The notes beneath the pieces were generated by a model. The model saw only the letters and a program-made list of their open reading frames with translations, did no database searches and was not told the DNA's origin. The position numbers and the translations under genes are program-made. A DNA stretch of 64,000 nt. It comes from Paragordius varius (taxonomy: Eukaryota > Animalia > Nematomorpha). The stretch's first letter is position 1. Each line of letters opens with the position of its first letter. Shown here piece after piece: positions 17,177-60,211 of the stretch. The DNA lies in assembly GCA_964247055.1 (NCBI GenBank), contig OZ176056.1, positions 1,364,001 through 1,428,000 of the forward strand. The letters are read 5' to 3'.

Positions 17177-17214
<38 letters not shown>

Positions 17215-19104
17215 TAATTAGAATCAAAAAACTTTTTGGAGGAAACGCGAAATATTAGTAATATATTTTTATTATATAGTTTTCATTATAAAATTTATAT
17301 TTTAAAATATTTAATTCGTGATTAGGTCCAGAAAATATAAGTAATTTTTATTATAATTTATAAAATTATAAATTAATCATTAAATTTTGGATAGATCGGG
17401 CCAAAATTGGTAATTATTCTATATAATTAATAAAACCTGGTTTACTGAAAAAAAAATTGTATGTAAAGATTACTATAAGAGCCCACATTGGGATAAATTT
17501 TGCAAGAAAAGTTAAGTATTTTATATAAATTATGTTTAAAATAATTATTGTGATTTAATTGGCGACATTAGTTTAAAAATCACCTAAATTACTATCAATT
17601 ACAATAAAATATTTGAGCTAAACTAAAACTGCCGGTTTTTAAAAAGCCATTAAGGTTTCAAACAGACTTTCAAATAGTGATTTTCCAATCTTTTCTAAAT
17701 TTAAATCACATGGAATATGGGATTAAAATTGTTAAATATTTTTAAAAGTGACATTCTTTAACTTTACTCTTTGATGGAAATTAGCTTTAAAGTTAATCTT
17801 TTGTGTTTTATTTTAATAGTAATATGAATTATTTTATAGATGACATGAAAATATCCATAAAATGTATGCTTTATATTAATAAAAATTGAAAAAAATTTAA
17901 CAAATTAATAAATTAAAATACCAAATTTAGCTTTGAAAGAGCGCATTAGCAGTATATTTTTTGTATTTTAATTTAAACTTCAATATATATTTATAATATT
18001 TTTGACATTAAACAATATATACATAGATATGATGGACACTATTCAAGGTATAAAGCCTATCTTTTTATCAAACGCAAAAACTTCTCGGAAAGTGCTTTAT
18101 AACTTTACATATTACTTTAAAAATAAATCATTTTACTCCGCTTATAGTTATTAATTATATTTTAAAGTTAATTACAATATGGGGATATATATATATAGTT
18201 TCAATTTGAAAGAACATCCATGAAGCATATAGTTTTAATTTGAAAGAACATCCATGAAATAATATATTAAAACCAAAACATGAGGTTTTTAATAAAATTA
18301 CTTTAAAAATGGTTCCATAAAAACCATAATTCAATTTTTAAAGATATTCTTTTTATCCATTTAACAACAAAGGATCCTTATATATAGCGGGCTTCATTTT
18401 TTTATAATTATGTTACCTTAAATTAGATTTAATCGACAAAGCAACTGAAAGTAATTAATTTTTATATTATTATTATTAATTGTAAATAATGCAGGAAAAA
18501 AATTTATCAAAAAACTTGACAATACTTAATTAATTATATAATTTTTTTTATTAAAATATTGTTAATTTAAATATATCAAATAGTTGGTTATATGGCATAA
18601 CTTTATATATTTTTCTTAATGATATAGGCGCCATGTTTCCAGAAGGAGTTGAAAGTAATTTATTATTTATGAAAATTATTTTATTAATTTTTATATCGAT
18701 TGTAATATAAGCAAATTGATAATCCTGTCACACAAACTCCAAATAATTAAGAACTAGAAAATTTGAAACCCTCGGTATAAATTGACAATGAAGTTTTATT
18801 TACAGTATACATCCTAAGATATAAAAAATATTTAACAATACGCAATACATTTTCTAATTTGTTATTTACTATAATAAAATTCCAATTTAACCAAATAAAC
18901 AATTTTTTATAATAATCCTAGATGCATTAGGATTGGAGGATCCTGAAATATCAAAAGGTATATATATAGATAACAAATAAATTTTAAACTATAACATACA
19001 GTGTTAAACATTATAATTATAAATTTAATCATAACTGTATTTAATATATAATTTTAGAAGTTTCGGAAGAAGCCATTAGAAATCTAAAGTCGGCACCTGA
19101 ATAA
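6360..19104 (+). CDS. Micro-exon gene, copy 1: secreted ~350 aa protein of unknown family, 36 exons
   Basis: Exons: 6360-6429 (signal peptide MMNAIMRTLSYSFIACILLTQTT), 7594-7659, 8008-8027, 8117-8162, 9152-9194, 9567-9585, 10080-10111, 10397-10447, 10474-10516, 11343-11363, 11439-11447, 11822-11827, 12272-12289, 13424-13438, 13478-13483, 13593-13640, 13831-13863, 14064-14093, 14239-14283, 14388-14429, 15079-15108, 15402-15413, 15442-15480, 15552-15569, 15706-15726, 15777-15797, 17326-17340, 17395-17409, 17469-17501, 17840-17863, 17931-17951, 18027-18047, 18427-18450, 18628-18654, 18922-18957, 19058-19104 (EVSEEAIRNLKSAPE*). Each is flanked by AG and GT (one GC) and is conserved in copy 2, with many synonymous changes. 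Exon 9152-9194 is 1 nt out of frame in this copy. Confidence 0.85.
8207..8785. mobile_element. hAT-type MITE with a nested second MITE
   Basis: Ends CAGGGGTGTACCAC and GTTGGATACCCCTTG; internal GCGGCCCGC-like motif (clear in copy 2 at ~45899); present but more decayed in copy 2. Confidence 0.6.
8389..8700. mobile_element. MITE of the TACCATTTACAGTTCAAAT family
   Basis: Inverted TTCAAATTCACCC / GGGTGAATTTGAA subterminal repeats; same family as 26820-27072 and 31099-31381. Confidence 0.7.
9239..9518. mobile_element. TA-flanked CAGT...ACTG MITE (Tc1/mariner-type)
   Basis: TA|CAGTAAATTTAAATTATACAGAC ... GTCTTAGAATTCCAATTTTTACTG|TA; related to 12445-13015. Confidence 0.6.
9681..9868. mobile_element. 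Palindromic MITE
   Basis: Long inverted repeats TATGCATTTTAATGGTTG..TATAGTTGGGCAATTTGCAACACAG vs CTGTGTTGCAAATTGCCCTACTATA..CAACCATTAAAATGCATA; relatives at ~29945-30090 and ~46836-47030. Confidence 0.75.
10791..11020. mobile_element. Near-perfect palindromic MITE, TA-flanked, copy-1 specific at this site
   Basis: CAGTCATGTATCCTTTATTTT... / ...AAAATAAAGCATACATGACTA; absent at ~48110 in copy 2; a half copy sits at ~44066-44208. Confidence 0.8.
12445..13015. mobile_element. TA-flanked CAGT...ACTG MITE, compound or nested
   Basis: CAGTAAAATTGATATTATACGGACAAAA vs TTTGTCCGTATAATTTCAAGTTTTACTG (ends 12916), with a second end at 13015; shorter form in copy 2 (~49480-49763). Confidence 0.7.
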
Positions 19105-20281
19105 TCAATTTGTTATATATAGTAATTTTGGAAAATTTTCCACATGAATAATATAGATTAAATATTTTAGCAAAACTATTCACAAAGTTATTTATCCAAT
19201 AAATAAATTTGATATGTGTTAATATTTCTAAAATTGAAGGGAAAAATAAAGCTGGCCGTTTAGTTATAGTTAATATTAGATATAACCTGTAAAATACAAT
19301 TAAAAAATTAATTTAAATTTATTAGCTAAGTGTTATATTTTATAAATTCTAGTTTATTAACTCTTAATTTTACACTTAAAACCAACGACTCACTCCAAAA
19401 CTAAATAAATGGTCAACAATTTATTACATTATCTGTACGAGATGGCATGTTGAGGAGGTTTTCTAATCCAGAGCTTTTCGTAACATAACTGTTTCAAAAT
19501 CAGTTTGGCTGAATTTGTTTATATGACTTCTAGATAAAAATATTTATAATTTTTACAGTTAACATTTTTAATTCTAACGGATAACTCCAAAATATGATTG
19601 AAGCAAATAGCTGATATTAGATAAATATCAAAAATTTCTATAATCCGAAAGCTTTTTCATAATGATACATTTATTTGCCTGTTGTATTTGCGATATAATA
19701 AATTAATGAAAAAAATTATTATAAAAAAGTTTACAGGCATTTTTACCTTATTTTATCATACTAAGAGGCTAAAACAGCATATCATAAAATTTAGCCTAAC
19801 GCTAAAAATATTTTTAGGATATTTTACGGGGCACTTGGTTGTAACACTACCTCAAAAGGTTATAAAGGGTTAAAATGAAAAATATAAAAAATTTTAGTTT
19901 TTTTTAAAATATACACCAAAAAATAGGTTTAAGTAAATTTTTTAAATCATACAGTTTTAAATATAATATTTTCGCACACTGCACCAAAGCCATAGAATAC
20001 GTGTTTTAAGATTTGGATACCATTGGGAGCACTCTCGATCAATAATCACCCTATATGTAATCGCGGTCAAAAATATTAAGCACAAATCATAATTACCAAA
20101 CATATATTCTAAACTAATTTATAAACTCCTTTTTATCTTGAATTTATAATATTATTTTTTTTAGTTTTTATTTGGCTAGTATTTTGCATCAGTAAAGTAT
20201 TTGCCATACTTCATAAATAAATCATAACTAAGGACCTACAAAAATAATTTTGAGCTTAACAAAAGTACCCTTGTTCTCGTA

Positions 20282-20345
20282 TAATAAATTGGCACAGCTT
20301 CAATATCATACAATCACGTAAAAACGCGTGTTTTTTCGCTTTAAA
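20282..20345 (+). promoter_or_regulatory. Conserved block directly upstream of the ACC ATG (putative core promoter or 5' UTR)
   Basis: ATAAATTGGCACAGCTTCAATATCATACAATCACGTAA.AACGCGTGTTTTTTCGCTTTAAA is nearly identical in both copies; it contains a reverse CCAAT and an ATCACGT E-box-like half site. Function is inferred. Confidence 0.35.
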
Positions 20346-20360
20346 TCATAATCAAATTTT

Positions 20361-23300
20361 ATGTCATCCGATATTAGTGTTTTGGATACATCGATTAATA
20401 ATATAAGTACTTCAAAACATGGTTCGCTTACACTATCTAATCCCGAAGAATTTGTTATAAAATTTGGAGGAACCACTCTAATTCAAAAGGTAATTTTTAT
20501 AATGTTTAAATTTAGATCCTTATTGCCAACAATGGTATAGCTGCGGTTAAATGTATGCGATCTATTCGAAGATGGGCATACGAAATGTTTCGAAACGAAC
20601 GAGCGATAAAATTTGTTGTTATGGTGACTCCCGAAGATTTAAAAGCAAATGCTGGTAAAAATCAATCATTAAAAGCAAAAGCAATTATAATTAATTTTAT
20701 AATTACTTTTTTCTATTTTGAATTTGTTTAATTTAAAGTCTTGTTTTTTTAATGTATCTATAGTTTTCATTTAATTAAATATAAAATAAAAATGAAAAAT
20801 TGATGAAAAAATTAATTTATGGACATAATATAATTTTTGTTCCGATAAGAGTGTAGTCTCCATAATTACCTCATATATTATATATTTTTTTACTTTTCTG
20901 ATTTTTTAATTAAACCCTAATATAATTGTTTAAAAGTGAACACTTTCCCAAAAATAAATTGTGGTTTTTATAAAACCCTCTAATGGATCATTAAATTTTA
21001 TTAAAATAGTTATTTTATCTAAATTAATTATTTTTTAAGTCTCACAATTTAACTTTAATATATTCTTAAAAAAAGCATGATTGATGCGTAAATAAATTAT
21101 GTATTTTTCCAACATTTGGGGTTCTTATGGAGAAGGTTATCTTATTAGATAATTAAATATATATAATTATAAAGTGAATATCATTCCTTAGTTTTACAAT
21201 AATTAAAATATACTTTCCTTTAATTATTAATTTCCCCCTTAATAATGTTAATATGAATATGAATATAGAGTACATAAAAATGGCGGATCAATATGTCCCG
21301 GTTCCAGGCGGTTCTAACAATCACAATTACGCCAACGTTGAACTCATTGTAGAGATTTGTGTGCGGACAGGGGCTGATGCAGTTTGGGCCGGTTGGGGTC
21401 ATGCCAGTGAGAATCCGGTCCTGCCTTTCGCTTTAGCGGACCGCTGCCTGGCTTTCTTGGGCCCTTCGGCCTTTGCTATGCATGCCCTGGGTGATAAAAT
21501 AGCCTCCACGCTGATTGCACAAAGCGCGCATGTTCCCACCCTGGCTTGGAGTGGATCAGGTTTAAACGTAAAAAATTTGTTGAGGTTTTGTGGTTTCTAA
21601 ACTTTTTAAGTTTTGAGGAATTTTTATTAATTTTTATTATTGTAACGGTTATTGTGAGTTTTGGTTTGGTTAAGAATTGAATATGATATTAGAATTTAAA
21701 GGTTTGAAATGTGGTTTAACGGTTAAAAATACCGAAAGGTTTAAATGGTTTTGTGAGTTTTTTGGCGCAGAAATTGAATATATAAGGTAATATTTATAAG
21801 AATTTAAAGGGGAGTTTTTCAACAAGGTTAGAAATACCGAAGGGTTTAAACGGTTTTGTGAGTTTTTTTTCTAAGAAATTTAATATATAAGCGAATGATT
21901 TTTTTGGAATTTAAAGAGGAGTTTTATTTCCAACAAATGCTTTTTGTTTTATGGCTATTTGAAAACCTATAAGTTTGGGCGTACGTACGTTTCTATTTTG
22001 ATTTGATGGGGATTAGTTAAATCAATTAATAATTTTAAATGATTCATCAATTAAAGAATTAGACCATAAGCTACATACTTTCCAAATCTACTTTGAATTA
22101 TAAATATATATGATATTGTGCATATAATAATTTTAAAGTAAGAACCAATATATGATTGAATGGTAAAAAATATTGTTGTATTAAAATAAATTATAGTGAT
22201 ATTTTATAATTTTAATGTTGCAACTTATTATAAGACTTATATCGCTGTAAATTTTTTAGTTGTACCGGAATATTAAAAAACCCTTTTGTCATACCGTAAT
22301 ATAATGCATTTTTTTAAAAAGCCAATTCTTAAATTATATTTATGTTATAAACCTTAAGCAAATACTTAAAGTAAAATTATATATTATCATATTGAGATTA
22401 TGTAAAAATAAAAATTTATTACCGTTTTTTAGTTAATTTACAGTAAAAATTCAAATTATACAGAAAAAACATGGAATCTAAAAGAATCAAAGACCCATAT
22501 TATTGTATCTTGATTTTTTTAATTTAACTTATTGTTTTGGTTACAAAAAATAGATATATAAATTGTTATTTAACTCAATTACATAATTTTAAATTTTGAT
22601 TTAATAATTTATGTGGGATTAAACAATATAGCGGACCTTTGAAAAATATTTTCCCTAATGTTTTTAAGTTTAATCCGTTTTTTAATTGAAACAATTTTAT
22701 TATTGAAACTTAAATGCAGGCATAGAGATTGAAAATTTAGAGGTCAAAAGTCGCTCCCTACAACAAAGTATAAATGCCGAACATTTTGCTAATCAATCCC
22801 TCATGACTAAAAATATTAGTGTTTCAACAACCAAACAAATAACCAATGCAGGAAATAGTGTTTCTACTTCAGCATCGCAAAACTCCACAACCTATTATGA
22901 TTTGGATAATTTGAATAACCTTATTCCAACTGAAATATATGAATCGGCTTGTATCTCAAACTGTGAACAAGGATTACAAGTTTATAGAGATTTTTTTTCG
23001 AGTTTTTTGGGGTTCTTTAAGGGTGTTTTAATAAAATTTTAATAATTTTTGAAGGTTTAATTGGAAAAAATTTAGTAAAATGATGTATATATATTCAAAG
23101 TTATGAATTATGTTTAAAAACAAATGAAGGATAATATATTTTTGTAAAGAACCATATTGATATCTTTAGGTTTTATAACCTGCGTAATTGAGAGAAATTT
23201 ATAATGAAATTACCAATTATTATATTTTAATTGTATCGCAACTCAAAACCACATATATTGTATAATAAAAATTATGGTTTAAAAGAATAGTTTTTTTTCT

Positions 23301-24626
23301 TTTTAAAAAGAAATATCTGTTTTTACTTAAAGTTTGAATAAAATTTTGGCATTTATATATAATTTTTTATATTTTTTTATATTTTTATTAACAAAAAATT
23401 TTTTTTTCAGATGAGCAAAAAAATTGGATATCCCATTATGATAAAAGCTTCCGAAGGTGGTGGAGGTAAAGGGATACGTAAAGTATTAAAGCCTGAAGAT
23501 TTTCCAATAGCTTTTAAACAGGTATCATTTTTTTAATATGAATTTTTTTTTAAAATTGAAATTATTAAATTTACATTATTTGTTTCAAAGAATTATGTAC
23601 ATATTAGTAAAATAGGTCATAAAAAACAGTGCATGATAAATTATATTTTTATTATCACTTTGGAAATTTATTATCTAAAAAGTTTGGTTACATTAATTAA
23701 TTTGCCTCTTTAAAAAAACCATCCATTTGTTTTATTTTTTTCAATATACATATATATATGCAGTATTTTTATTGAAAAATATGTAATTTTTTTCTCATCA
23801 CAATTTTAATATTGACTTTTCGCCTTAAACTAAATAATGGTGCAATTGCAATAATTTTTTCTATTTATTCATGCAAGGAAATTGTTAATATCACAGTATA
23901 CATATATTGCAAAAATTTCTGTTATAAACTTAATATAAAATTACATATTTGAGCCAAAATTTATTTTATCAATAATAAATGTTATTTAACTAAAAGGTTC
24001 AAACTGAAGTCCCAGGATCACCCATTTTCTTGATGGCCCTTGCTAGCCATTGTCGGCATTTGGAAGTTCAATTACTGGCTGATAGTTATGGAACAGCTAT
24101 TTCTCTCTTTGGTCGAGATTGTTCCATTCAAAGACGTCATCAAAAGATTATTGAAGAAGCACCCGTTACTATAGAAACCGCCCACGTGATTGAAGAAATG
24201 GAAAAGGTTGATTTTAAAGTTTTAGAGTTTTTTGGTTTTGCGGAATATTAAAAGGTACTAGGTAATTAAATTGTAAAATAAATGATAGAAATGTTCTAAT
24301 ATTTGGTCAATTTTTTAAAAAACATCAAAAAGCGTAAGTTTCTTGTGAGCTAGCGAAAAGGTAATACTGAGTCTTGTGATGCTTTTTAGCTTATATTATA
24401 GTTTATAACATTAAAAAACTTGCCTTATCAATGTATACATTTATCTTCACAGCCAAATTTACAGAATCATTCGTTTTTGTTAAAATAATGCAAGTTTTAT
24501 TATCCAACGTAACTAGATTTGCACAATCTATAATTTGTTGTTGGGCTCATAGAAGTAGCTACATTTGTTTTAGAAAAATTAAAATTACCATAAATATTCG
24601 CTTTTATTATACTGAAATATTTGCAA

Positions 24627-24678
<52 letters not shown>

Positions 24679-27600
24679 TAAGCACATTTGTGTTGTCCAA
24701 TTCACATAATTGTTACTGTAAAATATAAAATAAATCAAATTTTGTCCACAATTTAATTAACTAAATTAATGAGATGCAAATAGGGAAAAACTCTTTTTAT
24801 ATGTATGTAGGCCGCTGTAAGGTTAGCCCGTATGGTAGGCTATGTTAGTGCAGGAACTGTTGAATACTTGTATGATACTGCGAAAGGCACTTTTTGCTTT
24901 TTAGAACTAAATCCTAGACTCCAAGTTGAACACCCGTGTACAGAAATGATTTGTGACATTAATTTACCGGCTTGTCAATTACAGGTAATCTAAGATTATA
25001 TAAAAGCTCAAAAAATTAAATTTCTTAACAATTCAAAGAGTTTTAAATATTATTTAAAGTCTTTTAGATTTGGAATTTAAATTAATTAATATATATTTTT
25101 GAAGTTTTTTGTGACAAGGATTATTGACGCAATATATAAGTTAGTTTAATTAAGTTTTTGTCAACTTTAATTCCATATATATTATATTGTATTTGGAAAA
25201 ATAAATTTTTGATTTTTTTGAATATATATTCTATATTAGTTATGTTATAAGGGAATATTATAATTAACTGAAAGTTTTTCTTTATCACAAAAAATACTTT
25301 TTTTAATTGTTTAAGATTTTCCTGTCAAAAAATTTGTAATACGCTTAATATATTTTACAGTACAAATTATTATATATGTATCAATGTAAGATTTACAAAA
25401 GAAATCTGAGCGAATAGTGTTTAATACATAAAATATAAATTACACCAAATAAAGTAAATATTCGAAAATTAAATTTTTTGAATTTAAATATATAGATTGC
25501 TATGGGCTTACCACTTTACCGTATAAAAGATATTCGAGTTTATATGGGTTTATCTCCGTGGTTTATGGTGGAAACACCTCTTCAAAGTACATATTTTTAG
25601 GATAATTTTTAATTTTTGACCAGAAAATGTAAAATAATTATTAAAAATTATTTAGGAATTGGTAAATGAATCAGGAATTTTTGCGGGTTTTTATAAAATA
25701 ATAAATTTAATTTTATAATTTTTTCTTATAAATCTAAATGTGAAAAAAATAATTTTATAGATACATCTATCTTGTTTTGGATTGTAAATTAGATTTATTT
25801 TAATAATATAGATTATAGACGCTTGAAACCATTTGATTTATATTCAAATACAAATAATTTGCTTTAACAAAAAATTTACTTAGATTCATTCTTAAATGCC
25901 TTATTTTATTAATCTTTTATGGTGTTTTTAGTACCCATTACTGCTAACACAAATGCCATAATAAAACAAGCTGTTACGGAAACTCCCCTTACAAACCAAA
26001 ATGAGAAAATGCAAATTTCAAGCCAAAAAACTAAAATATCTGAAAATTTTATTAATGAAAATGAAAATGCGCTAGAAAATATTTTGGTTCGAAATCAACG
26101 CTTAAATAACTCAATCACTGATGGATATTCAATCTTGTCAGCAGCCAGCGTAGATTCTCAATATAAACCTCGACCCCGGGGACATGTCATAGCTTGTAGG
26201 ATAACGAGTGAAAATCCTGACGAAGGTTTTAAACCAACGTCGGGGCAAATTCAAGTAAGTTGGCTTTTTTTGAAAATTTTTTTGTTAAATATTTGATTTT
26301 AAGGGTTTTAAGTTTTGTAAAGTTTTGTAAAGTTTAGTTTAATAATTCATTTTAACTTGTGTATCCATTATTTATTCAATTAATTTTTTGTATAAATATT
26401 ATTTACACACATACTTTACTTGATTTTTTTGGTTGTTTAGGAACTAAATTTTCGGAGTAACAAAAATATTTGGGGATATTTTAGTGTTGGGGCTTCGGGC
26501 GGTTTGCATGAATTTGCCGATTCCCAATTTGGACATTGCTTTTCGTGGGGTGAAAACCGAGATGAAGCTAGACAGTATTCCGTTAAATCTTTTTTTTGAA
26601 ACTTCTATCTTTTAAATCTGTTTTAACTTTAGAAACTTTTGACAATCAAGGCTTATAATTTATAAAAATTTTGGAGTTATTTAACCTAGTAATGTATATA
26701 TTTATCTAGTAATTTATACTCGAAATAGCAAAATTTATTAAAATTAGTAAATTTATAATTTTTAGCAAAATTTTGGGTTATTTATATATATAATGAATAT
26801 ATATATATAATGAATAATACCATTTACAGTTCAAATTTACCCTCGAACAATTCAAATTCACCCTAAATTAAATTAAGTGTTTTTAAGATTAAAAATTATA
26901 AAATATTTTTTATGTTTTAAAAATGAAATTTCATTTAAATTTAAATAATACTGAAAAATTAAACTATGTCATTAAGATATTCCTATTAATGATGAGTTAT
27001 ATTAGATCGAAAACACATAGTTTATTTTAGGGTGAATTTGAATTTTTGAGGGTGTATTTGAACTGTAAATGGTATATATGAATTGTAAATGGTATATATA
27101 TTTATTGGTCTATTATAAAAACCTATCATATATATATATATATATATATATTTTAAATTCTTTAATTGATATGATAAATTGTTTACAACGTGGTTTATAG
27201 CGGCGTGTCCATCATAAATGGCCTCGCACGCATTTTTAACTCAAAAAAAATTTTGTGGTCGCATCAAATATATATATATAAATATATATATGGGCATATT
27301 CATAAGTAATCTATTTCATACTCAGGACTTTAAAATGCAAACATAATATAACAATTTTTTTATTTATCTCCTTGCCATTTAAATAGAGACTCATTTAAAG
27401 AAATTTTTGTTTAAGAAATATTCATTTTATTGTGATTTATTTGAGCATATTTTTGCATATTATGGATAATTCCATTTCCGATTATTGATAAAAAAATTAT
27501 AATTTTAGTATCAAATGAGTTTTTTTACAAATTTAGTTTTAATGAATAATTTACAATTAATTTCGCTTAATTCTTAATTTATTTTTGAGGAATTTGGTTG

Positions 27601-30600
27601 TTGGCCTTAAAGAATTATCGATTAAGGGTGATTTTAGAACCACTGTTGAATACCTTATAACTTTGTTGGAAACGGAAAGCTTTCAAAAAAATAATTTTGA
27701 TACGGAATGGTTGGATAAACTTATTGCTGAAAAATTTCAAGTATATATTACCAAATTATAATTTTTTATTTCATAATTCGCTATTCAATAAAGATTTAAA
27801 GTATTAAATATTTGCTTAATTATATTTAAATTTATGTATCTGAGGCCCTTATATTTATTACAAGTATATATAAAATGGAATTTTATACATTTTCTTACTT
27901 TTACTGATTACCGTAAAATCCAATCTTAGATGTGATTAATTAAAAATTTTCTTAGTTATCTGGTCTTTTAAAACAATTGAACGTGTCATATAATTATAAA
28001 TAAGGCCATAATAATCAAAAAGTTAAAGATTTGGTTTTTTTATATTGGTTTTAATTAGATCGATGTTTGAATGATTTTAAACTACACATATATACGGTTT
28101 TGCAAAAAACTTTTACCCTAATTATATAGAATTAATTATTTTTTTAAATGTAAATATTTTTATTTAAAATCTTACATAAATTTTTCACTTTCAAACAATT
28201 ATATAATATTAGTCCGAAAATTCTGATACTTTGATTGGAGTTATACACATAACTAATCATATGATTAATTTCAATATTTAAAGTTTTCAGATTTTGATTG
28301 GGATAAAATTTTAAATTAATTATTTTTTACTTTTCAAGAAGTGAAATCTATCAGAATATATATTTTATTTTTTATGGTTTTAAATATTTTTACATTTTTT
28401 AAACAATTTATCTAATAATTAGAAAAATTGAGAAAATTACCCATTATATATTATGAAATTTATTTTAATAATTAGTCTGAAAAACCGGATACCTTGATTG
28501 GAGTTATATGTGCCAGTATACATATAGCTGATCAAAAAATTTGTTCGAGCGTAGATCGATTTCGAAATGCGTTGGCCCGTGGACAATGCCTACCTGCTAC
28601 TACGTTAATTCACACCCTTTCAGTTGATTTAATACGTGAAGGCATTAAATATAGTGTACAGGTAATTAGTTGGTTTTTTAAATAAATATAAGTAGTTTTT
28701 AAGCAAATTTTTGGATATTTTTAACGAATTTTTAAATATTTTTTATAGTATAAATAACTTTTTTTGAAAGAAACAGAAATTTTACATATTTTTTGGTTGA
28801 TTTAATACGTGAAGGCATTAAATATAGTGTACAGGTAATTAGTTCATTTTTGGAAATTATTCAATAAAAATAGTTGGTTTTTGGGTATAAAATATTTGCA
28901 ACTTTTAATTAATTTTTGGATATTTTTAAACCTCTTTTAAGCTACTTTTGTAAGAACCAGAAATTATAAACACATGTTGATTCACACTCTTTCGGTTGAT
29001 TTAATACGTGAAGGCATTTAATATAGTGTACAGGTACTTAGTGGGTTTTGTTACTTTGTTAATTAGTTGGTTTATTGATTTTCTTTTTGGAAAAAAATAT
29101 AACTAGTTTAAAAGGACGATTTTTAGCAAATTATTTTGAAAACACATGTTAATTCACACTCTTTCAGTTGATTTAACACGGGAAGGCATTAAATATAGTG
29201 TACAGGTTAGTGTTACTTACTTAGTTAGTTAGTTGGTTTTTGGGTAAAAAAAGTTTTTACAACTTTTAATAAGTTTTTGGATATTTTTAAACTGTTTTAA
29301 GCTTCTTTCTAAAAGAACCATAATTTTTAAACACATGTTAGAAACTATTTCGGTTGATTTAATACGAGAAAGCATTAAATATAGTATACAGGTCAGTTGG
29401 TTAATTGGTTTTGTTTTTGGAAATTAAGATACTATTTTTGGAAATTAGGATATAAGTAGATTTTAGCAAATTTTTGTTTATAGTATATACTTTTTTTGAA
29501 AGAAACAGAAACTATAAAACTCATCTTTAATCATGTTTTTTTCGGTTGATTTAATACGTGAAGGCATTAAATATAGTGTTCAGGTTAGTTTGTTTTTTAA
29601 AATTAAAATATAAATAGTTTAAAAGGACAATTTGTAGCAATATTTTTTAAAAAAAACATAAGTTTTATGACACATGTCGATTCGAAATCTTTCTAATTAT
29701 ACGTGAAGGTATAAAATATAGTGTACAGGAAATGTTTTTTTAATAGAAGTTTAAAAATTTTTTAATATTTAAAGTATTTCAATAAAATAGGGGCCGAAAA
29801 TGGCTTCGCGGGTCGCTTTTGAAACCAGGGCATTAATATTTAGATTTTTATGGCAATTTTATTTATTATTTATCCCTTCAATTTTCGCTTATTTTTTGCC
29901 ACGTAGAAAAACGTATTAATTTTTTTAACAAATATTAATTTTAGCATATTAATGGTAGCTTATTTCACACTATAGTTGAGCAATTTGTGACACAGTTAGT
30001 AGTGCATGGGAAAAAGAAAGGAAAAAATGTTTATTTAATATATTTTTTTTCATACACTCCTGTGTTACAAAATTATCAAAAGGCATACTGTATATAAGGA
30101 TATCTTTAAATTTTAAGAATTATTTTATTATATTTTATTTGTTTATACATAATATTTCACACATGTTATCATAATTTAAGCTTTGAATTTCTTTGAATCA
30201 ATTTTAATTGTTTTTTAATCTTTAAACCAATATTTTGATTGGAACCGTTAATTTTAAAGATGTAAGTATTAGATATTATTTTACACGCTTTAAGTCGATT
30301 AATAGGCGAATGCATAAAATTAAGTAAGCACGTTTGTGTAAAAAGTTGTTTAGCATGTTTAAATTATCTTTTAGGTGAGCTGTTAGAAATTTTCAGCGAA
30401 TCTAAATGAGTATTAAATTAATTTCTTAAATAAAAAATTTCATTATTTGTGATTTTTGGTTAAAAATATATTAATTGTAATATTTTATTTTTGGAAAAAT
30501 ATTTTAATTTCACCCTGAAATATATTCCTCTAGGTAACTAAAACGGGACCAAACAGTTATTTTTTGCTCATGAATGGCAGTTTTATCGAAATTGATGCCC

Positions 30601-30948
30601 ACAGGTAAAATTTTAATATCTTTACAATTTTATTTTAAATTTAAAATTTTTTATCGTAAAACAATAATATTTTAAAGCGTATATATAATAACACTTTTGA
30701 ATAGTTTATAGATAATTTAAGGAATTTGAGAATTTACTTATTTCACAAACCATAATTTTAGTTATATTATCAAGGATTAAAAAATATGGTGTTTATAAAA
30801 ATATTTAATGTCTTTTTATAAATTTATTTTTATTACTTAAATTATTTTAGATTAAGTGATGGAAGTTTATTGTTCAATCTCAATAATCAATCCTTTAATA
30901 GCTATGTTAAGGAGGAAGTGGGCGGTACCAAATTTAGAGTTGTTATAG
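20361..30948 (+). CDS. ACC: Acetyl-CoA carboxylase, 5' part only (biotin carboxylase and following linker domain, ~789 aa); ends before the biotinyl domain
   Basis: Exons 20361-20489, 20516-20654 ([23 protein letters not shown]), 21269-21559 ([13 protein letters not shown]), 22720-22979, 23411-23521 ([16 protein letters not shown]), 23997-24206 ([17 protein letters not shown]), 24811-24984 ([16 protein letters not shown]), 25496-25586, 25932-26254 ([16 protein letters not shown]), 26441-26574 ([13 protein letters not shown]), 27590-27740, 28476-28661, 30534-30604, 30851-30948. Phases are consistent and there are no stops. No EVMKM biotinyl exon follows. Confidence 0.95.
21644..21925. repeat. 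Short degenerate tandem repeat (~105 bp, ~3 units) in ACC intron 3
   Basis: Recurrent AACGGTTTTGTGAGTTTT...GAATTTAAAGG...AAATACCGAA. Confidence 0.6.
24630..24675. repeat. (TA)n microsatellite; others at ~11035, 12415, 17180, 27130, 31165, 51965, 52160, 60742
   Basis: Direct reading. Confidence 0.95.
26820..27072. mobile_element. MITE, TA-flanked, TIR CCATTTACAGTTCAAAT
   Basis: TA|CCATTTACAGTTCAAAT ... ATTTGAACTGTAAATGG|TA; perfect 17-bp terminal inverted repeat. Confidence 0.85.
28610..29730 (+). repeat. Tandem amplification of the 3' end of ACC exon 12 plus its donor site (original + 6 copies, spacing 145-199 bp)
   Basis: GTTGATTTAATACGTGAAGGCATTAAATATAGTGTACAG|GT recurs, ending at 28661, 28834, 29033, 29205, 29391, 29583 and 29728. 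Confidence 0.9.
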
Positions 30949-31098
30949 GTATAATTAATTTCATTTTTTTTATTTCAAATATTTATTTAAAAATAAATTT
31001 TACAAAAGTGCAAATGTTTTCTATATAAAAAAACATCCATACTTTTTTAAATTTTATTTTTTCCTACATTATTTATAATATAACATAAATTGAATTAA

Positions 31099-31159
31099 AT
31101 CCATTTACACTTCAAATTTAAACATTATGAATTTACATTTTTGATGTTAAAAATTACCG

Positions 31160-31198
<39 letters not shown>

Positions 31199-31381
31199 TC
31201 TAAAATTGAAAATTTTATTAAAATTAACATAATACTGATAAAAAATATGAATATGGTAAACAATATATATAATATTAATATATTACCCCGGAAACACATA
31301 ATTGATATATAGTGTTAATTTGAATTGTTCAAGGCTGATTTGTATTTTTAATTGTTTGAGGATTTGAAATGTTAAAGGTAT
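31099..31381. mobile_element. Decayed MITE (same family as 26820-27072) between the last ACC exon and the first FN3-like exon
   Basis: CCATTTACACTTCAAATTT ... ATTTGAAATGTTAAAGGTA; internal AATACTGA..AAAAT and GAAACACATA motifs are shared with 26820-27072. Confidence 0.65.
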
Positions 31382-31556
31382 ATGATGATGAATTTAATTA
31401 CTTTAACTAGAGCTACAGTAACTTAAACATATCCATTATTTACATTTAAATTATTTCTTACCTAATTTATCTTTGCGAAATGTAGGACAAGTAATAATAA
31501 ACTCTAAATCAAACTAATAAATTTTGGTTGTTTAATTTTAAAAAAATTTGCATTAG

Positions 31557-32835
31557 CAAACTCAATTCGAAATCAAGGGACTCACTTTGTCCACCGAGTA
31601 TTTGGTTAAGGTTACACCTGCTTATGAAAATCTACCGCTTATCGGAGCATATTCAGCTTTTAAATGTATATCAGGTAATGAATGCATTTAAAGTTAGACT
31701 AGTTTTTGATCATAAAGTTATTGAAATATTTGCATTTTCTAATTATATTATATCTATTTATGTATATATGGTGTAGTTAATCTTAACGATACAGGTCAAT
31801 ATGTTCTTAATCAGGAAGGTAAAGTATATTAAAGTTTTTATTTTTACTTATATTTATATTCTAAATTTATTGTTTAAAGATTTGTCCAGGTGGGTGGTCA
31901 AAATAAAAGGCGTGTCCCTAATAAATGGCACAACCGCTGGAAATACAAATTCTTTAGATTTATTAGTTTTTCTTGCCAACCCCTTAATCAATTATCCTGA
32001 AAAAGCAAAAGACATCCGTGCCCTAGACATTTTTTTGAGTAGCCCGGGGAAAGATTTACCTGCTAGAAGAGGATTTATTTCGGTATATTTTTGATAGATT
32101 TTTAATAATTTTAAATTTATGACAAGCTTTTTTACCCAAAATCTAAAACTATAAATATCTTCGGTTTTAAACGACGAAATATAAGTTTTTATGACAATGT
32201 ATATATGGTTAACGGGAGTCATATTTGAATCATAATATAAAGGCAGACGAGTACGTTTTATAACTAGTTGTCTAAATTTATATAATATAATTTTGCCTTT
32301 TTTACAGTAAATCATGAAATTGTACGGACGAACGTGAAAATATAATGACACTGCTGTAATTTATTAAACGTATTATTAAATATTATTCATAGTTTTGGAA
32401 TTTTAAAGTATGAAATAAAAATCTATTTTAATGATACGATTAATTATGTTATTTTCCAATTGTATTAAAATAATTTTTGTAAATGGTTTATAGTATGATT
32501 ATCTTGAAAAAGTATATGTCTTTATATTTTTACTGTTTTCTCTATAATTTCAATTTTTACTGTAAAATATTTTGAGAGATGTTCTGTCTGTATAAGCATC
32601 AATTTTTACTGTATTTCTCTATATATATATTCGTACGACCCAAAAATTTTATGTATTTGTATAATAACTAATGTGTGCATTTCTTTTTTAGGCGGTTTCT
32701 GATAATTATCGCTTCCCATATGTTTTGCCCGATACGGAATACGAGATTGTGGTTAGACCAGTCTTTATAGATCAAGATGCCGCATCCACAGAAGCAAGTT
32801 CCCATCGCGTTTATGTTCAAACGAATCACTGCTAA
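31557..32835 (+). CDS. 3' exons of a fibronectin type III-like domain gene; its 5' part is not in front of it
   Basis: Exons 31557-31674 (QTQFEIKGLTLSTEYLVKVTPAY), 31795-31818 (24 nt, phase 1), 31880-32082 and 32692-32835 (YRFPYVLPDTEYEIVVRPV...QTNHC*). Two LxPxTEYxVxV-type FN3 signatures; the phases chain correctly. Confidence 0.65.
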
Positions 32836-33239
32836 TCATGAAACTAAATTTCAAAAAAAACTATTATATAATTAAAATAAATATGGGGGGTTATCGGGCG
32901 GTGGTTTAAACTACGATGTGATATGTTTAATTAATTCATTTACAGATTAACCCCTTTTTTAATGATCCATCTATAGTATATCCTGGAAAGTACAAATAAA
33001 TTTTAGTTATTATGTCTAATAGATATAAATATATACCTGATCGAATGTGTTAGGGTTTTATTTGCTTAATATTCTACATTACGCTTTTGTTGATAAAAGA
33101 TCTCTCTCCGATGTTTCAATATCTACCCGTGATTTATTTTATGGACCCCAGTTTGAATTGAGAAATATTAGGAGATGACTTGTTGTAATACATTAATCAA
33201 TATCAATTTATTTATTATCACTAACCTACGGATAGGAAT

Positions 33240-33352: not shown

Positions 33353-33904
33353 TTATACGAGTAAATTGCAAGCAGATTATGGAGGTCGGTTTATATCAAA
33401 ACTTAAATTGGTTTGAAGAAATATGAGACTAACACACTAGGTGGATATCCTATAAAAAGTCGATTTTCTTATAAGTTATTATCTTTAATATTTTCAAATT
33501 TTCGCTAATTTTTGTATGAAACTTACAGTAATTTAACTTACACAGACAACATGCAAAAATTAAAAATAACCATTTCTTTTTTTTTGTTTTTTTTATTTAA
33601 CTCTTTGGGTTGTGAAATGGGGATTAGAGATGTAAATTGGTAAGAGCTTATTTTTATAATCATAGGAATTATAATTTATGAATAAGTAGAGTAGTCTTTT
33701 AAAAAAATATTTTTCAATTTTTCCATGTTGTGTTTGTAATATTAATATTTGTGAAATAGCTTTTTCTCGTTATTGTACAAAATGCTTAAAACATGAGCAT
33801 ATATAATTTAAGCAACAATCATTTTATGAAAGTTAATGTTTTTTAAATAATAACACACAAATAGAATACATAAATCCTACAACCTTCTCTTGTTTTGAAA
33901 ATCG

Positions 33905-36900
33905 GTGGGTTCGGTGATGAGTGGTGGTAAAAAACAATAAAACGGTAACCTATTTAGTATTTTACAGTAAACTCAAGTTAGCCAAGTCTTATAATAAACC
34001 GTACGGCAATATCTGTTTTCAATCAATTCTCAACTCGTTAACAACCAAAACACCATCTATCTTGTTACTGAATGGCGGCTTCGGTGATGAGTGGATGTAC
34101 ACAATAATACTTTAATCTGTTTAGTCCTTTACAGTAAACTCAAGTTAGCCAAACCTTACAATAAACCGTCCGGCAATATCTGTTTTCAATCAATTCTCAA
34201 CTCGTTAACAACCAAAACACCATCTATCTTGTTACTGAATGGCGGCTTCGGTGATGAGTGGATGTACACAATAATACTTTAATCTGTTTAGTCCTTTACA
34301 GTAAACTCAAGTTAGCCAAGTCTTACAATAAACCGTCCGGCAAAATCTGTTTTCAATCAATTCTCAACTCGTTAACAACCAAAACACCGTCTATCTTGTT
34401 ACTGAATTGGGGCTTCAGTGATGAGTGGATGTACACTATAATACTTTAATCTGTTTAGTTCTTTACAGTAAACTCAAGTTAGGCAAGTCTTTACAATTAA
34501 CCGTCCGGCAAAATCTGTTTTCAACCAATTCTCAACTCGTTAACAACCAAAACACCGTCTATCTTGTTACTGAATTGGGGCTTCGGTGATGAGTGGATGT
34601 ACACAATAATACTTTAATCTGTTTAGTTCTTTACAGTAAACTAAAGTTAGCCAAGTCTTTACAATAAACCGTCCGGCAAAATCTGTTTTCAATCAATTCT
34701 CAACTCGTTAACAACTAAAACACCATCTATCTTGTTACTAGATTGCGGGATTCGGTGATGAGTGGAAGCACAAAATAACTTAATCTGTTTAGTCCTTTCA
34801 GTAAACTCAAGTTAGCCAAGTCTTAGAATAAACCGTTAGGAGAAATCTGTTTTCAATCAATTCTCAACTCGTTAACAACTAAAACACCATCTATCTTGTT
34901 ACTGAATTGGGGCTTCGGTGATGAGTGGATGTACACAATAATACTTTAATCTGTTTAGTCCTTTACAGTAAACTCAAGTTAGCCAAGTCTTTACAATAAA
35001 CCGTCCGGCAAAATCTGTTTTCAATCAATTATTAACTCGTTAACAACCAAAACACCGTCTATCTTGTTACTGAATTGGGGCTTCGGTGATGAGTGGATGT
35101 ACACAATAATTAATCTGTTTAGTCCTTTACAGTAAATTCAAGTTAGGCAAGTCTTTACAATAAACCGTCCGGGAAAATCTGTTTTCAATCAATTCTCAAC
35201 TCGTTAACAACCAAAACACCGTCTATCTTGTTACTGAATTGGGGCTTCGGTGATGAGTGGATGTACACAATAATACTTTAATCTGTTTAGTTCTTTACAG
35301 TAAACTCAAATTAGCCAAGTCTTTACAATAAACCGTCCGGCAAAATCTGTTTTCAATCAATTCTCAACTCGTTAACAACTAAAACACCATCTATCTTGTT
35401 ACTAGATTGCGGGATTCGGTGATGAGTGGAAGCACAAAATAACTTAATCTGTTTAGTCCTTTCAGTAAACTCAAGTTAGCCAAGTCTTACAATAAACCGT
35501 CCGGAGAAATCTGTTTTCAATCAATTCTCAACTTGTTAACAACTAAAACACCATCTATCTTGTTACTGAATTGGGGCTTCGGTGATGAGTGGATGTACGC
35601 AATAATACTTTAATCTTAGTTCTTTACAGTAAACTCAAGTTAGCCAAGTCTTTACAATAAACCGTCCGGTAAATCTGTTTTCAATCAATTCTCAACTCGT
35701 TCACAACCAAAACACCATCTATCTTGTAACTGAATTGGGGCTTCGGTGATGAGTGAATGTACACAATAATACTTTAATCTTAGTTCTTTACAGTAAACTC
35801 AAGTTAGCCAAGTCTTTACAATAAACCGTCCGGTAAATCTGTTTTCAATCAATTCTCAACTCGTTAACAACCAAAACACCATCTATCTTGTTACTGAATT
35901 GGGACTTCGGTGATGAGTGGATGTACACAATAATACTTTAATCTGTTTAGTTCTTTACAGTAAACTCAAGTTAGCCAAGTCTTTACAATAAACCGTCCGG
36001 TAAATCTGTTTTCAATCAATTCTCAACTCGTTCACAACCAAAACACCATCTATCTTGTTACTGAATTGGGGCTTCGGTGATGAGTGGATGTACACAATAA
36101 TACTGTTCTTTACAGTAAACTCAAGTTAGCCAAGTCTTTACAATAAACTATCCGGCAAAATCTGTTTTCAATCAATTCTCAACTCGTTAACAACCAAAAC
36201 ACCATCTATCTTGTTACTGAATTGGGACTTCGGTGATGAGTGGATGTACACAATAATACTTTAATCTGTTTAGTTCTTTACAGTAAACTCAAGTTAGCCA
36301 AGTCTTTACAATAAACCGTCCGGTAAATCTGTTTTCAATCAATTCTCAACTCGTTCACAACCAAAACACCATCTTGTTACTGAATTGGGGCTTCGGTGAT
36401 GAGTGAATGTACACAATAATACTTTAATCTTAGTTCTTTACAGTAAACTCAAGTTAGCCAAGTCTTTACAATAAACCGTCCGGAGAAATCTGTTTTCAAT
36501 CAATTCTCAACTCGTTAACAACCAAAACACCGTCTATCTTGTTACTGAATTGGGGTTTCGGTGATGATTGGATGTACACAATAATACTTTAATCTGTTTA
36601 GTCCTTTACAGTAAACTCAAGCCAATTACAATAAACCGTCCGTCAAAATCTGTTTTCAATCAATTCTCAACACGTTAACAACTAAAACTCCATCTATCTT
36701 GTTACTGAATTGGGGCTTCGGTGATGAGTGGATGCAAAAATAACTAATCTATTTAGTCATTTACAGTAAAATGAAGTTAGCCAAATCTTATAATAAACCA
36801 TCCGTCAAAATCTGTTTTCAATCAATTCTCAACACGTTAACAACTAAAACTCCGTCTATCTTGTTACTGAATTGGGGCTTCGGTGATGAGTGGATGCAAA

Positions 36901-51963: not shown

Positions 51964-51999
<36 letters not shown>

Positions 52000-52159: not shown

Positions 52160-52190
<31 letters not shown>

Positions 52191-59916: not shown

Positions 59917-60211
59917 ATGTCATCCGATATAAGTGTTTTGGATACATCGATAAATAATATAAGTACTTCAAAACATGGTTCGCTTACGCTATCCAATCCC
60001 GAAGAATTTGTTATAAAATTTGGGGGAACCACTCTAATTCAAAAGGTAATTTTTATAATGTTAAAAATTTAGATCCTTATTGCCAACAATGGTATAGCTG
60101 CGGTTAAATGTATGCGATCTATTCGAAGATGGGCATACGAAATGTTTCGAAACGAACGAGCGATAAAGTTTGTTGTCATGGTGACTCCCGAAGATTTAAA
60201 AGCTAATGCTG
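59917..60211 (+). CDS. ACC: Acetyl-CoA carboxylase copy 2, exons 1-2 (59917-60045, 60073-60211); presumably continues beyond the window
   Basis: Same 89-residue sequence as copy 1 (MSSDISVLD...FGGTTLIQK|[12 protein letters not shown]...LKANA); intron 2 carries the RTE insertion. Confidence 0.93.

Follow-up and report, generated by a model that had tools for sequence, protein, structure and literature searches.

Truncated ACC copies with borrowed tail exons in an amplified array: a possible stand-alone BC module in Paragordius varius

The window, a stretch of 64,000 nucleotides from the nematomorph Paragordius varius, carries on its plus strand the first fourteen exons of a gene for acetyl-CoA carboxylase (ACC), an enzyme of fatty-acid metabolism (window 20361-30948), which we rebuilt into 789 open codons (Table 1). 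All of the introns of this copy are of the GT-AG type, its exons contain no stops and no indels, and its coding sum of 2368 nt amounts to 789 codons plus one nucleotide, so that exon 14 ends in phase 1. Exon by exon, Pfam finds Biotin_carb_N, CPSase_L_D2, Biotin_carb_C and ACCA_BT, the last of these matched as far as profile position 112 of 120, and at exon 7 there is ~80% identity to the biotin-carboxylase (BC) domain of human ACC1 (2YL2). In the full-length gene, the exon that follows exon 14 is the biotin carrier, with its EVMKM motif and a match to PF00364. The window copy therefore stops exactly before the carrier exon, as a first-pass annotation had proposed for an intact 14-exon copy of ~789 aa, and on this the exon rebuild and Pfam agree. 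The duplicated sequence upstream of the copy likely includes a putative ACC promoter.

Table 1. Features of the window, with the basis for each assignment
Feature	Position	Strand	Basis
167-bp satellite array, left bound of unit	1..2721	.	spacing 162-168 nt; self-BLAST match to 33900-41186
Duplicated sequence upstream of ACC 5' part	17474..20360	+	76-94% identity, collinear with full-length ACC upstream
ACC exon 1 (ATG, 43 codons), then 26-nt intron	20361..20489	+	intact in 14/14 copies
ACC exon 2 (Biotin_carb_N, first part)	20516..20654	+	exon rebuild, Pfam, copy comparison
ACC exon 3 (Biotin_carb_N)	21269..21559	+	Pfam E 2e-17
ACC exon 4 (variable insert)	22720..22979	+	exon rebuild, copy comparison
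ACC exon 5 (ATP-grasp, glycine-rich loop)	23411..23521	+	PF02786
ACC exon 6 (ATP-grasp)	23997..24206	+	Pfam; 10 places on C7, all open
ACC exon 7 (ATP-grasp, catalytic stretch)	24811..24984	+	Pfam
ACC exon 8	25496..25586	+	exon rebuild
ACC exon 9 (lineage-specific insert and Biotin_carb_C start)	25932..26254	+	Pfam
ACC exon 10 (Biotin_carb_C)	26441..26574	+	Pfam
ACC exon 11 (BC domain end; last ACC exon of medium copies)	27590..27740	+	Pfam, copy comparison
ACC exon 12 (BT domain, first part)	28476..28661	+	PF21385
Degenerate repeats of exon 12 3' end, array in intron 12	28604..29700	+	full-length gene has array too
ACC exon 13 (BT domain)	30534..30604	+	exon rebuild
ACC exon 14 (BT domain; phase-1 end; final ACC exon here)	30851..30948	+	rebuild, Pfam
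ACC intron 14, 5' part, to end of homology with full-length gene	30949..31329	+	30518-31329 at 76% identity
Dispersed repeat, ~200-250 nt, ACC-side breakpoint	31164..31411	.	matches on several other contigs
Donor-gene exon F0, final 8 nt, natural GT donor at 31491	31483..31490	+	aligned with fuller donor copy L003
Fa (phase 0 in, 1 out)	31557..31674	+	open-frame chain, copy comparison
Fb' micro-exon (42 nt, phase 1 to 1)	31777..31818	+	acceptor and donor kept in every copy having Fb'
Fc (phase 1 to 0)	31880..32082	+	open-frame chain, copy comparison
Fd with TAA stop	32692..32835	+	open-frame chain, copy comparison
AATAAA, possible poly(A) signal, 41 nt past stop	32876..32881	+	read from letters; weak evidence in AT-rich DNA
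167-bp satellite array, right bound of unit	33888..41186	.	spacing and self-BLAST
Second ACC copy: exon 1 (59917-60045), 27-nt intron, exon 2 (60073-60211) only	59917..60211	+	
Non-LTR retrotransposon ORF (endonuclease and reverse transcriptase), interrupts second copy	61742..63556	-	

That this ACC part is followed by borrowed tail exons is confirmed. The first of these, Fa, begins at 31557 on the same strand, 609 nt past exon 14 (a gap earlier put at ~600 bp), and the chain Fa-Fb'-Fc-Fd forms a single open frame of 168 codons that runs to a TAA at 32833-32835. Joined directly to Fa, ACC exon 14 is out of frame; Fb' (31777, with an inner acceptor at 31795) and Fc (31880) are both entered in phase 1, in frame with exon 14. 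The phase-1 joins suggested at first pass for 31795 and 31880 hold in this comparison, as does a suggested 5-nt exon, since the piece 31486-31490 is present with its GT donor and would restore the frame into 31557. The FN3 label given to the tail fared less well: Pfam returns nothing significant for these exons (the best being Interfer-bind, E 0.057, for Fa), Fc has no match among 1.84 billion representative proteins in a library without this genome's own proteins, and the sole FN3 lead is a weak one, from Fd to fn3 clusters by language model (scores 0.87-0.90). The donor gene of the tail, with fuller copies at C7:0.79 Mb, 9.34 Mb and 9.52 Mb, is an orphan, taxon-restricted gene, possibly FN3-like.

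At the junction, ACC intron 14 is joined to the final 8 nt of donor-gene exon F0, and the dispersed repeat on the ACC side recurs, inverted, within a different intron of the true ACC. The same junction is found in two other copies (C7:1994787-1998295 and C7:2055665-2057076), 1-9% diverged around it, a pattern that marks it as old and recurrent. Being common to two diverged copies, it is not a haplotype mis-join, the caveat attached to the first reading. One might still suspect an assembly artefact, be it mis-joined haplotypes or collapsed repeats, with the junction absent from the animal: satellites and 32-75 kb units make this repeat-rich region hard to assemble. Assemblers, however, do not make identical breakpoints in diverged contexts, and here one junction recurs in three units with a dS of 0.15-0.16 between their ACC parts, while a second common junction, 28038|31764, is present in ~10 units differing by 2-7%; the window, moreover, contains no N. 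We regard an artefact as scarcely credible.

A duplication junction between ACC and the inside of another gene, as first proposed, is thus real and seen in three units. The accompanying idea of a single tandem duplication, with breakpoints in an FN3 gene and in ACC, is rejected. Left of the window, where an intact FN3 gene had been predicted, there lies instead another truncated unit made up of ACC exons 1-5 and 11, the tail from 31764, and satellite. Right of the retroelement, where ACC exons 3 onward and the EVMKM exon had been predicted, the next 30 kb hold no further ACC exons, the EVMKM exon being elsewhere. With both flank checks failing, the junction old and recurrent, and the unit amplified, a one-step origin no longer fits.

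The amplified units form a satellite-flanked array on C7 of 13 truncated ACC copies (3 long, ~6 medium, 4 short). These flank the sole full-length ACC (minus strand, C7:1.754-1.794 Mb) on either side and are found in both orientations relative to it. C7 has just one EVMKM exon, one central domain and one carboxyltransferase (CT), all within 1.754-1.781 Mb on the strand opposite the window copy; the carrier exon has a single occurrence genome-wide, and the only central and CT domains found on C7 are those of the full-length gene. The truncated copies share its introns and 97-100% of its amino acids, and in a copy-by-copy comparison all of their ACC splice sites are kept. Exon 3 is found at 14 places on C7 (99-100% amino-acid identity, no stops), exon 9 at nine, eight of them open (with a TAA in the copy at C7:1955639), and exon 12 at only four (100% amino-acid identity). 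Defects are seen in two copies, a 1-nt insertion at C7:741 kb and the TAA at C7:1.956 Mb.

The window copy is the most complete of the three long ones. About 10 of the 13 copies lack exons 12-14 and Fa through the common 28038|31764 deletion, which leaves exon 11 (phase 0) facing Fb' (phase 1) and hence no in-frame join; the third long copy lacks Fa-Fc, and its exon 14 meets a stop three codons into Fd; the short copies consist of exons 1-5 and an orphan exon 11. Because most copies are without a frame link to the tail, what is conserved is the truncated ACC and not the ACC::FN3 fusion. The chimeric gene first envisaged stands insofar as a BC-BT-only frame can continue into borrowed exons, but most copies have lost the link, and we consider that interpretation, taken as a whole, partly supported.

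The main new result is that the substitution pattern places the truncated copies under strong purifying selection at the protein level. Across the ACC exons, all copy pairs give dN/dS of 0.02-0.07; the window copy differs from another truncated copy at 75 synonymous and 17 nonsynonymous positions (dS 0.16, dN/dS 0.06). Some 80% of exon differences fall at codon position 3, and amino-acid changes concentrate in two variable inserts. Events confined to truncated copies number 120 synonymous against 22 nonsynonymous (p 1e-56), those in exons 1-3 across 13 copies 52 against 3 (p 3e-29), and copy-specific singletons 11 against 2. Introns read as codons, our control, give pN/pS of 0.67-0.97, and gap openings amount to 44-57 per kb in introns as opposed to none in the exons of truncated copies. 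Since selection has kept their protein code intact, the shortened copies are probably of use. Constraint looks just as strong on the short copies, although a protein encoded by them would be unable to fold as a BC domain. Their deletion must be recent, unless selection operates on them in a way that we do not understand.

Could the copies nonetheless be dead, that is, unexpressed pseudogenes whose exons are cleaned by gene conversion or unequal crossing-over with the full-length ACC? Exchange with an essential gene would expose harmful variants to selection, and some exchange there has evidently been: the site patterns are incongruent, with 12, 10 and 9 synonymous sites backing the three possible splits, and in the tree the full-length gene falls within the copies, whose long, medium and short types are themselves scattered; together these point to sequence passing between the copies and the true gene. 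Identity also peaks beside the satellite, the short copies, plainly crippled, and the stub of exons 1-2 are as clean as the others, and the two defective copies fit as well. Against this, synonymous divergence in the exons (0.15-0.20) is as high as intron divergence, so that exchange must have been too rare to homogenise them or to impose a dN/dS of 0.05, and singletons are as large a share in exons as in introns (0.37), which argues that exons were not separately homogenised. By our own derivation, one-way overwriting by the true gene cannot bring pairwise dN/dS under about 0.5. The tail-bearing segments, which occur in truncated units only, are 8-13% diverged, and neutral decay over such a time would have raised dN to ~10 times what is observed and introduced stops and indels. 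We judge dead copies to be quite improbable.

Constraint on the tail exons is, by the same measures, modest. Their dN/dS is about 0.2-0.5 overall and 0.35-0.43 array-wide (p about 1e-3); a span of 0.35-0.48 compares with 0.05 for ACC. One could argue that a functional truncated ACC leaves its tail unused, the FN3-like exons serving only as 3' UTR or poly(A) donor; the transcript would then end in intron 14, or enter Fa out of frame and stop after 17 codons, giving a bare BC-BT protein of ~790-815 residues. Fa, the first natural acceptor past exon 14, is indeed the out-of-frame one, the frame link is missing from most copies, and the early stop in the third long copy points the same way. So does the weak constraint itself, which on the most recent branches (6 synonymous, 16 nonsynonymous) is near neutral. 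On the other hand, ~10 copies keep every tail splice site and have no stops, nonsynonymous variation in the tail lies below neutral (p about 1e-3), and constraint peaks between the two copies with Fb'-Fd in frame (9 synonymous, 6 nonsynonymous; dN/dS 0.20, p 0.002). Fa, an exon left out by the in-frame route, has 0 synonymous and 5 nonsynonymous changes when the two long copies retaining it are compared. A stop in Fa followed by three introns would, in addition, usually trigger RNA decay. An unused tail is in our estimation unlikely, if the most serious of the alternatives.

Retained exons are as constrained as those of the true gene whatever the truncation point, and in each form the last donor is intact and in phase with the exon that comes next in the full-length gene. 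These features would also be expected if the copies were alternative 5' modules joined to a single downstream set of ACC exons, by very long cis-splicing for the minus-strand copies, which are located upstream of the true gene and share its orientation, and by trans-splicing for those on the plus strand. At three conserved positions, too, the copies keep a residue, which we take to be the usual one in ACC, that is changed in the 5' part of the full-length gene. The window copy and four others, however, lie on the opposite strand, and with the single carrier exon, and the only central and CT domains on C7, belonging to the full-length gene, cis-splicing is impossible for the window copy. The encoded proteins are nearly identical (97-100%), with no obvious gain from the choice; intron 14 near the donor is poorly conserved (76%); and constraint on the tail exons would be left unexplained. 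We rate this explanation below even that of dead copies.

By a modest margin of belief, we favor the view that the window holds one unit of an old, amplified rearrangement product whose truncated ACC is under selection. An ancestral break inside ACC intron 14 would have joined the 5' part, carrying upstream sequence, the ATG and exons 1-14 (a complete BC domain plus the BT domain), to the end of the donor exon. The composite unit, bounded by 167-bp satellite, would then have been multiplied and reshuffled into the 13 copies that now flank the full-length gene, and these would be transcribed from the co-duplicated promoter. That the truncated ACC is selected and translated we think quite likely from the sequence comparisons. 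In the likeliest product, exon 14 would run on into the 42-nt exon at 31777, with phase 1 on both sides of the join, for a fusion of ~918 residues (789 BC-BT and ~129 from Fb', Fc and Fd), although we would put inclusion of the tail in the window copy's protein at slightly below an even bet.

Without a biotin carrier and carboxyltransferase, such a product would make no malonyl-CoA alone. Structures have been solved for BC-only constructs of 540-587 residues, so that a BC domain can by itself be a stable protein, and because ACC activity depends on BC dimerisation, we propose that the product may be a stand-alone BC module that pairs with the BC domain of full-length ACC, acting as a regulator or as extra BC capacity with copy number as dosage. 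This pairing mechanism we hold as rather doubtful.

The Sdic cluster of Drosophila melanogaster consists of tandem chimeras between a truncated dynein intermediate-chain gene (Cdic) and annexin X (AnnX), lying beside their parents. Here, too, a partial duplicate of an essential gene has acquired part of a different gene, been amplified near its parent, and been retained. The ACC array departs from Sdic in several ways: its truncated portion comes from a metabolic enzyme and is the catalytic BC domain, the 13 members form two inverted arms with satellite spacers and differing cut points, and the tail donor is not a neighbouring gene. SRGAP2C, a truncated paralogue in human segmental duplications, binds and antagonises its full-length parent. 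The ACC copies resemble it in keeping the 5' exons and a dimerisation-competent domain, with pairing to the parent as a plausible action; they differ in their much greater age (dS about 0.16), their far stronger constraint (dN/dS about 0.05) and their 13-fold multiplication, and in that their pairing is conjectural. In the bacterial-type multi-subunit ACC, the biotin carboxylase AccC is a separate protein that works on a separate carrier. The truncated product would likewise be a BC protein without carrier or carboxyltransferase, with catalytic ATP-grasp motifs intact, but it descends by truncation of the animal's own multidomain ACC and keeps the eukaryote-specific BT domain; we know of no separate carrier protein for it.

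Transcriptional fates of duplicates in segmental duplications are among the subjects of one study (PMC6169893), and partial and chimeric duplicates are among those of a review (PMC3449122). In their introns, variable internal deletions, retroelements and satellite flanks, the ACC copies look much like unprocessed pseudogenes in pericentromeric or satellite-rich segmental duplications; such pseudogenes drift, with dN/dS near 1, stops and indels, whereas the ACC copies do not. The array itself sits in satellite-rich DNA, which is often silent.

Within this very AT-rich eukaryotic genome (110.6 Mb in 44 contigs), the ACC copy of the window can be rebuilt on the plus strand as 14 exons running from 20361 to 30948, with introns that are all GT-AG. 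Its coding length is 2368 nt, or 789 open codons and a single further base; exon 14 accordingly ends in phase 1. Pfam, applied exon by exon, recovers Biotin_carb_N, the ATP-grasp domain CPSase_L_D2, Biotin_carb_C and the BT domain (PF21385, on exons 12 and 14, reaching position 112 of the 120 in the profile), while exon 7 is ~80% identical to the biotin-carboxylase (BC) domain of human ACC1 and keeps its catalytic ten-residue stretch. In the full-length gene, on the minus strand of the same contig (OZ176056.1, hereafter C7, of which the window covers 1364001-1428000), the exon following exon 14 is the biotin carrier with EVMKM; the window copy thus stops exactly before the biotin carrier, and the intact, 14-exon, ~789-residue copy described in the first-pass annotation is borne out. 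Missing from it are the biotin carrier domain with its MKM biotinylation motif, the central domain and the carboxyltransferase domain. These parts occur once each, the carboxyltransferase being counted on C7, at C7:1.754-1.781 Mb on the minus strand, and the biotin-carrier exon is unique in the genome. Splicing of exon 14 across a giant satellite intron to a downstream biotin-carrier exon is therefore ruled out for the window copy. The copy is free of stops, frameshifts and lost splice sites, and hence of the disabling mutations that define an unprocessed pseudogene.

Two introns have unusual structures. Intron 1 is just 26-27 nt long (20490-20515, 60046-60072), beside introns of >1 kb in the same gene. 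In intron 12, the 3'-terminal 60-75 nt of exon 12 recur as a series of degenerate copies (28604-29700), many of which include the donor site; this array is also present in the full-length gene (C7:1.783-1.784 Mb), and is conserved between that gene and the long truncated copies.

A single tandem duplication, with breakpoints inside an upstream FN3 gene and inside ACC, had been proposed as the origin of this arrangement, and would place an intact FN3 gene to the left of the window and the remaining ACC exons, EVMKM included, to the right of the RTE. Instead, a short truncated ACC unit lies on the left, no further ACC exons lie in the 30 kb to the right of the RTE, and the downstream parts of ACC occur once, on the minus strand. 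Moreover, C7 carries ACC exon 3 at 14 places, in the full-length gene and in 13 truncated copies, and a second junction is shared among the latter. Taken in isolation, one repeat unit misleads: what seems a plain tandem duplication belongs to an array that has been reshuffled. The structure of that array was derived in part from sequence and, for the remaining loci, from the coordinates of genome-search matches. Exon 6 is present ten times on C7, exon 9 nine times and exon 12 four times, and from these counts the copies fall into three classes, long, medium and short (see table). The second junction (28038 joined to 31764), common to medium and short copies, deletes exons 12-14, the original junction and the first tail exon, Fa; the long copy at 2.05 Mb is without 31483-32138.

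Coordinates of ACC-derived, donor-derived and neighboring features (bare positions are those of the window)
Feature	Position	Strand	Basis or content
Tail exon Fa	31557-31674	+	reconstructed chain
Tail exon Fb'	31777-31818	+	reconstructed chain
Tail exon Fc	31880-32082	+	reconstructed chain
Tail exon Fd	32692-32835	+	reconstructed chain
Plus-strand exon 3 copies	C7: 1.242, 1.274, 1.312, 1.351, 1.385 Mb (1.385 = window)	+	exon 3 matches
Minus-strand exon 3 copies	C7: 0.741, 1.868, 1.923, 1.961, 2.009, 2.069, 2.107, 2.140 Mb	-	exon 3 matches
Full-length gene, exon 3	C7: 1.793 Mb	-	exon 3 match
Full-length gene, biotin-carrier exon	C7:1780360-1780623	-	single occurrence in genome
Full-length gene, central domain	C7:1767646-1777942	-	only PF08326 matches
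Full-length gene, carboxyltransferase	C7:1754529-1761260	-	only PF01039 matches on C7
Long copies (n=3)	window, C7: 1.99-2.01 Mb, 2.05-2.07 Mb		exons 1-14
Medium copies (n= about six)			exons 1-11
Short copies (n=4)			exons 1-5 and exon 11
Donor-gene copy L019	C7:9336767-9338476	+
Donor-gene copy L020	C7:9521043-9522757	-
Micro-exon gene	6360-19104, 43700-58000		upstream of ACC
Non-LTR retrotransposon ORF	61742-63556	-	605 residues

The two halves of the window repeat each other (1-20878 against 33900-60436, 76-93% identity), each beginning with a 167-bp satellite. The second ACC copy consists of exons 1-2 only and is interrupted by a non-LTR element, the ORF of which (endonuclease plus the start of reverse transcriptase) sits in intron 2. 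The micro-exon gene adjoining ACC upstream is duplicated with every unit. In this and other comparisons between units, identity is 92-93% beside the satellite arrays and ~76-85% mid-unit; in a tree of the exon 1-4 region the full-length gene is nested among the copies and the three classes are scattered. Together these patterns indicate that the units are mosaics from repeated exchange, and exchange seems to begin in the satellite and to spread outward from there.

At the junction, homology between the window and the full-length gene extends over 17474-31329, that is, into intron 14, and ends in a dispersed repeat of ~200-250 nt. From 31483 onward the window aligns with a more complete donor-gene copy (C7:0.79 Mb), from which 31483-31490 can be recognized as the 3'-terminal 8 nt of exon F0 of that gene, followed by its natural GT donor. 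The "5-nt exon" of the first-pass annotation is present as sequence and would restore the frame to 31557; it is part of this 8-nt remnant. Could the entire arrangement be an artefact of assembly? The same junction between ACC intron 14 and F0 is found in three diverged units; it is real and inherited, and a haplotype mis-join is ruled out as its source. The short dispersed repeats at 31164-31411 and 32299-32566 match several other contigs, and the former, at the ACC-side breakpoint, may have mediated the rearrangement. The donor gene has two further copies of 80-85% identity, at C7:9.34 Mb and 9.52 Mb (L019 and L020), which are inverted and nearly identical to each other and lie 185 kb apart near the other end of the contig; across four exons compared, 6 synonymous changes and 1 nonsynonymous change separate them.

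Borrowed from this donor gene, the tail begins 609 nt downstream of exon 14, and Fa-Fb'-Fc-Fd form one open frame of 168 codons that ends at the stop originally assigned to it. A phase 1 to phase 1 join from exon 14 is in frame into Fb' (31777), into an inner acceptor at 31795 or into Fc (31880), while the direct join to Fa is out of frame and that through 31486-31490 into 31557 is in frame. The entries originally suggested at 31795 and 31880, and the 5-nt route, are accordingly in frame; the FN3 label attached to the tail has no significant profile match behind it. Single exons served as queries in all searches. Pfam gave nothing above threshold for Fa, Fc, Fd or the donor-gene exons, the best sub-threshold match being Interfer-bind, an FN3 model, on Fa (E 0.057). 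Fc had no match among 1.84 billion representative proteins, nor in an Atlas look-up, and for Fd a language model points to look-alikes in fn3 clusters (0.87-0.90), which constitute a lead and not a test. The putative tail domains are each split across two exons. The 3' flank beyond Fd (33240-33394) is similar to an inverted monomer of the 167-bp satellite, at 75-83% identity to many monomers, and the two may share a common origin.

In every examined copy all ACC exons present are open and keep AG and GT, apart from two of the 13 copies with one defect each, a 1-nt insertion (0.741 Mb) and a TAA (1.956 Mb). Pairwise dN/dS (Nei-Gojobori) falls within 0.02-0.07 throughout, also where two truncated copies are compared; the window copy and the 2.0-Mb copy are separated by 75 synonymous and 17 nonsynonymous differences (dS 0.16). 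Some 80% of ACC exon differences fall at codon position 3, with the amino-acid changes in two variable inserts. Counting each variable site once, the truncated copies display 120 synonymous and 22 nonsynonymous events; separate counts are 52 versus 3 for exons 1-3 of all 13 copies and 11 versus 2 for copy-specific singletons. As a control, introns read as codons by the same counting give 0.67-0.97. Gap openings number 44-57 per kb in introns and zero in truncated-copy exons, and in the gap-free columns of a 14-copy alignment 63% of intron sites vary, as opposed to 9% of exon sites.

Several explanations other than direct selection were considered for this pattern. A mutation-rate effect behind the gap in identity between introns and exons is ruled out, as synonymous sites are as diverged as introns. 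The share of singletons is 0.37 in exons and introns alike; the exons have thus not been separately homogenised, which disposes of exon-limited gene conversion. Nor are these recently truncated, once full-length paralogues: the tail-bearing segments, found only in truncated units, are themselves 8-13% apart, and most ACC divergence therefore post-dates truncation. There is also the rival view that the copies are dead and their constraint second-hand. By our own derivation, overwriting of neutral copies by a selected gene cannot yield a pairwise dN/dS below ~0.5, because the time for which each copy has decayed neutrally after it was last overwritten is never shorter than the selected path separating the two overwriting times; exchange frequent enough for such indirect selection would, furthermore, have erased the 15-20% silent divergence. 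Purifying selection has acted on the ACC part after the rearrangement, and we conclude from these sequence comparisons that the truncated copies are probably translated and useful now, or were until very recently.

Among about ten copies the splice sites of the tail are all kept and no stop is found, with a 4-nt deletion in Fd in one copy. For the tail, dN/dS is 0.2-0.5 (array-wide 0.35-0.43, p about 1e-3), and the donor gene is fast-evolving itself (~0.3 against array copies). An open frame across the junction is possible in two of the 13 copies. The exon phases also allow exon 11 of a medium copy to be joined in frame to Fd. Between the two copies with an in-frame tail, Fb'-Fd differ by 9 synonymous and 6 nonsynonymous changes (0.20, p 0.002) and Fa by 0 and 5, a pattern that, small as the numbers are, fits a splice by which the long copies join exon 14 to 31777. 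In broken-frame copies the ratio is 0.48, and on recent branches the tail looks near neutral (6 synonymous versus 16 nonsynonymous). A rival reading accordingly has the same BC-BT protein made with the tail left untranslated.

What might such proteins do? The array is best read as encoding stand-alone BC or BC-BT proteins, a family that arose from ACC and has been retained, the window copy's product probably carrying ~129 borrowed residues at its end. Alone, this product is unable to carboxylate acetyl-CoA. BC-only constructs are stable proteins, as known structures attest, and eukaryotic ACC needs BC dimerisation; from this we infer that the truncated product may pair with full-length ACC. 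One possibility, which we put forward only tentatively, is a stand-alone BC-BT protein, amplified in dosage, that would pair with, regulate or shield the full-length enzyme. Short copies and the exon 1-2 stub look as clean as other copies, which this reading does not account for. A further reading, which we consider very improbable, treats the 13 copies as 5' halves of a single enzyme that could stand in for one another, with transcripts that would be joined to the single set of ACC exons 15 onward (or 12, or 6 onward). This would account for full-length-like constraint on every retained exon in every truncation class; it would call for very long cis-splicing from upstream same-strand copies and, for opposite-strand copies such as that of the window, for exon-to-exon trans-splicing of the kind known from mod(mdg4).

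Partial and chimeric duplicates are usually dismissed as pseudogenes, above all in satellite-rich repeats. Here, the duplicated part is only the catalytic head of a metabolic enzyme that is itself essential and single-copy; its 13 copies have preserved their protein code, while silent sites and introns have diverged by 15-20%. Partial or chimeric duplicates amplified near their parent are of a known kind, as in Sdic, and so are truncated paralogues acting on their parent, as in SRGAP2C. We know of no ACC case, and our literature search returned nothing that describes a truncated ACC family in an animal. If expressed, these copies would be the first case, as far as we are aware, of an animal with a family of stand-alone ACC biotin-carboxylase proteins; a multidomain enzyme would here have been split again by nature, providing a natural experiment on the control of ACC by BC dimerisation.

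A minor observation concerns the full-length gene itself, which has changed at three positions: exon 3 codon 10 (P to R in the YVPVPGG stretch), exon 13 (D to E) and exon 14 (V to A). The other residue is kept in the truncated copies compared (13 for exon 3, 3 for exons 13-14), and is presumably the usual ACC one.
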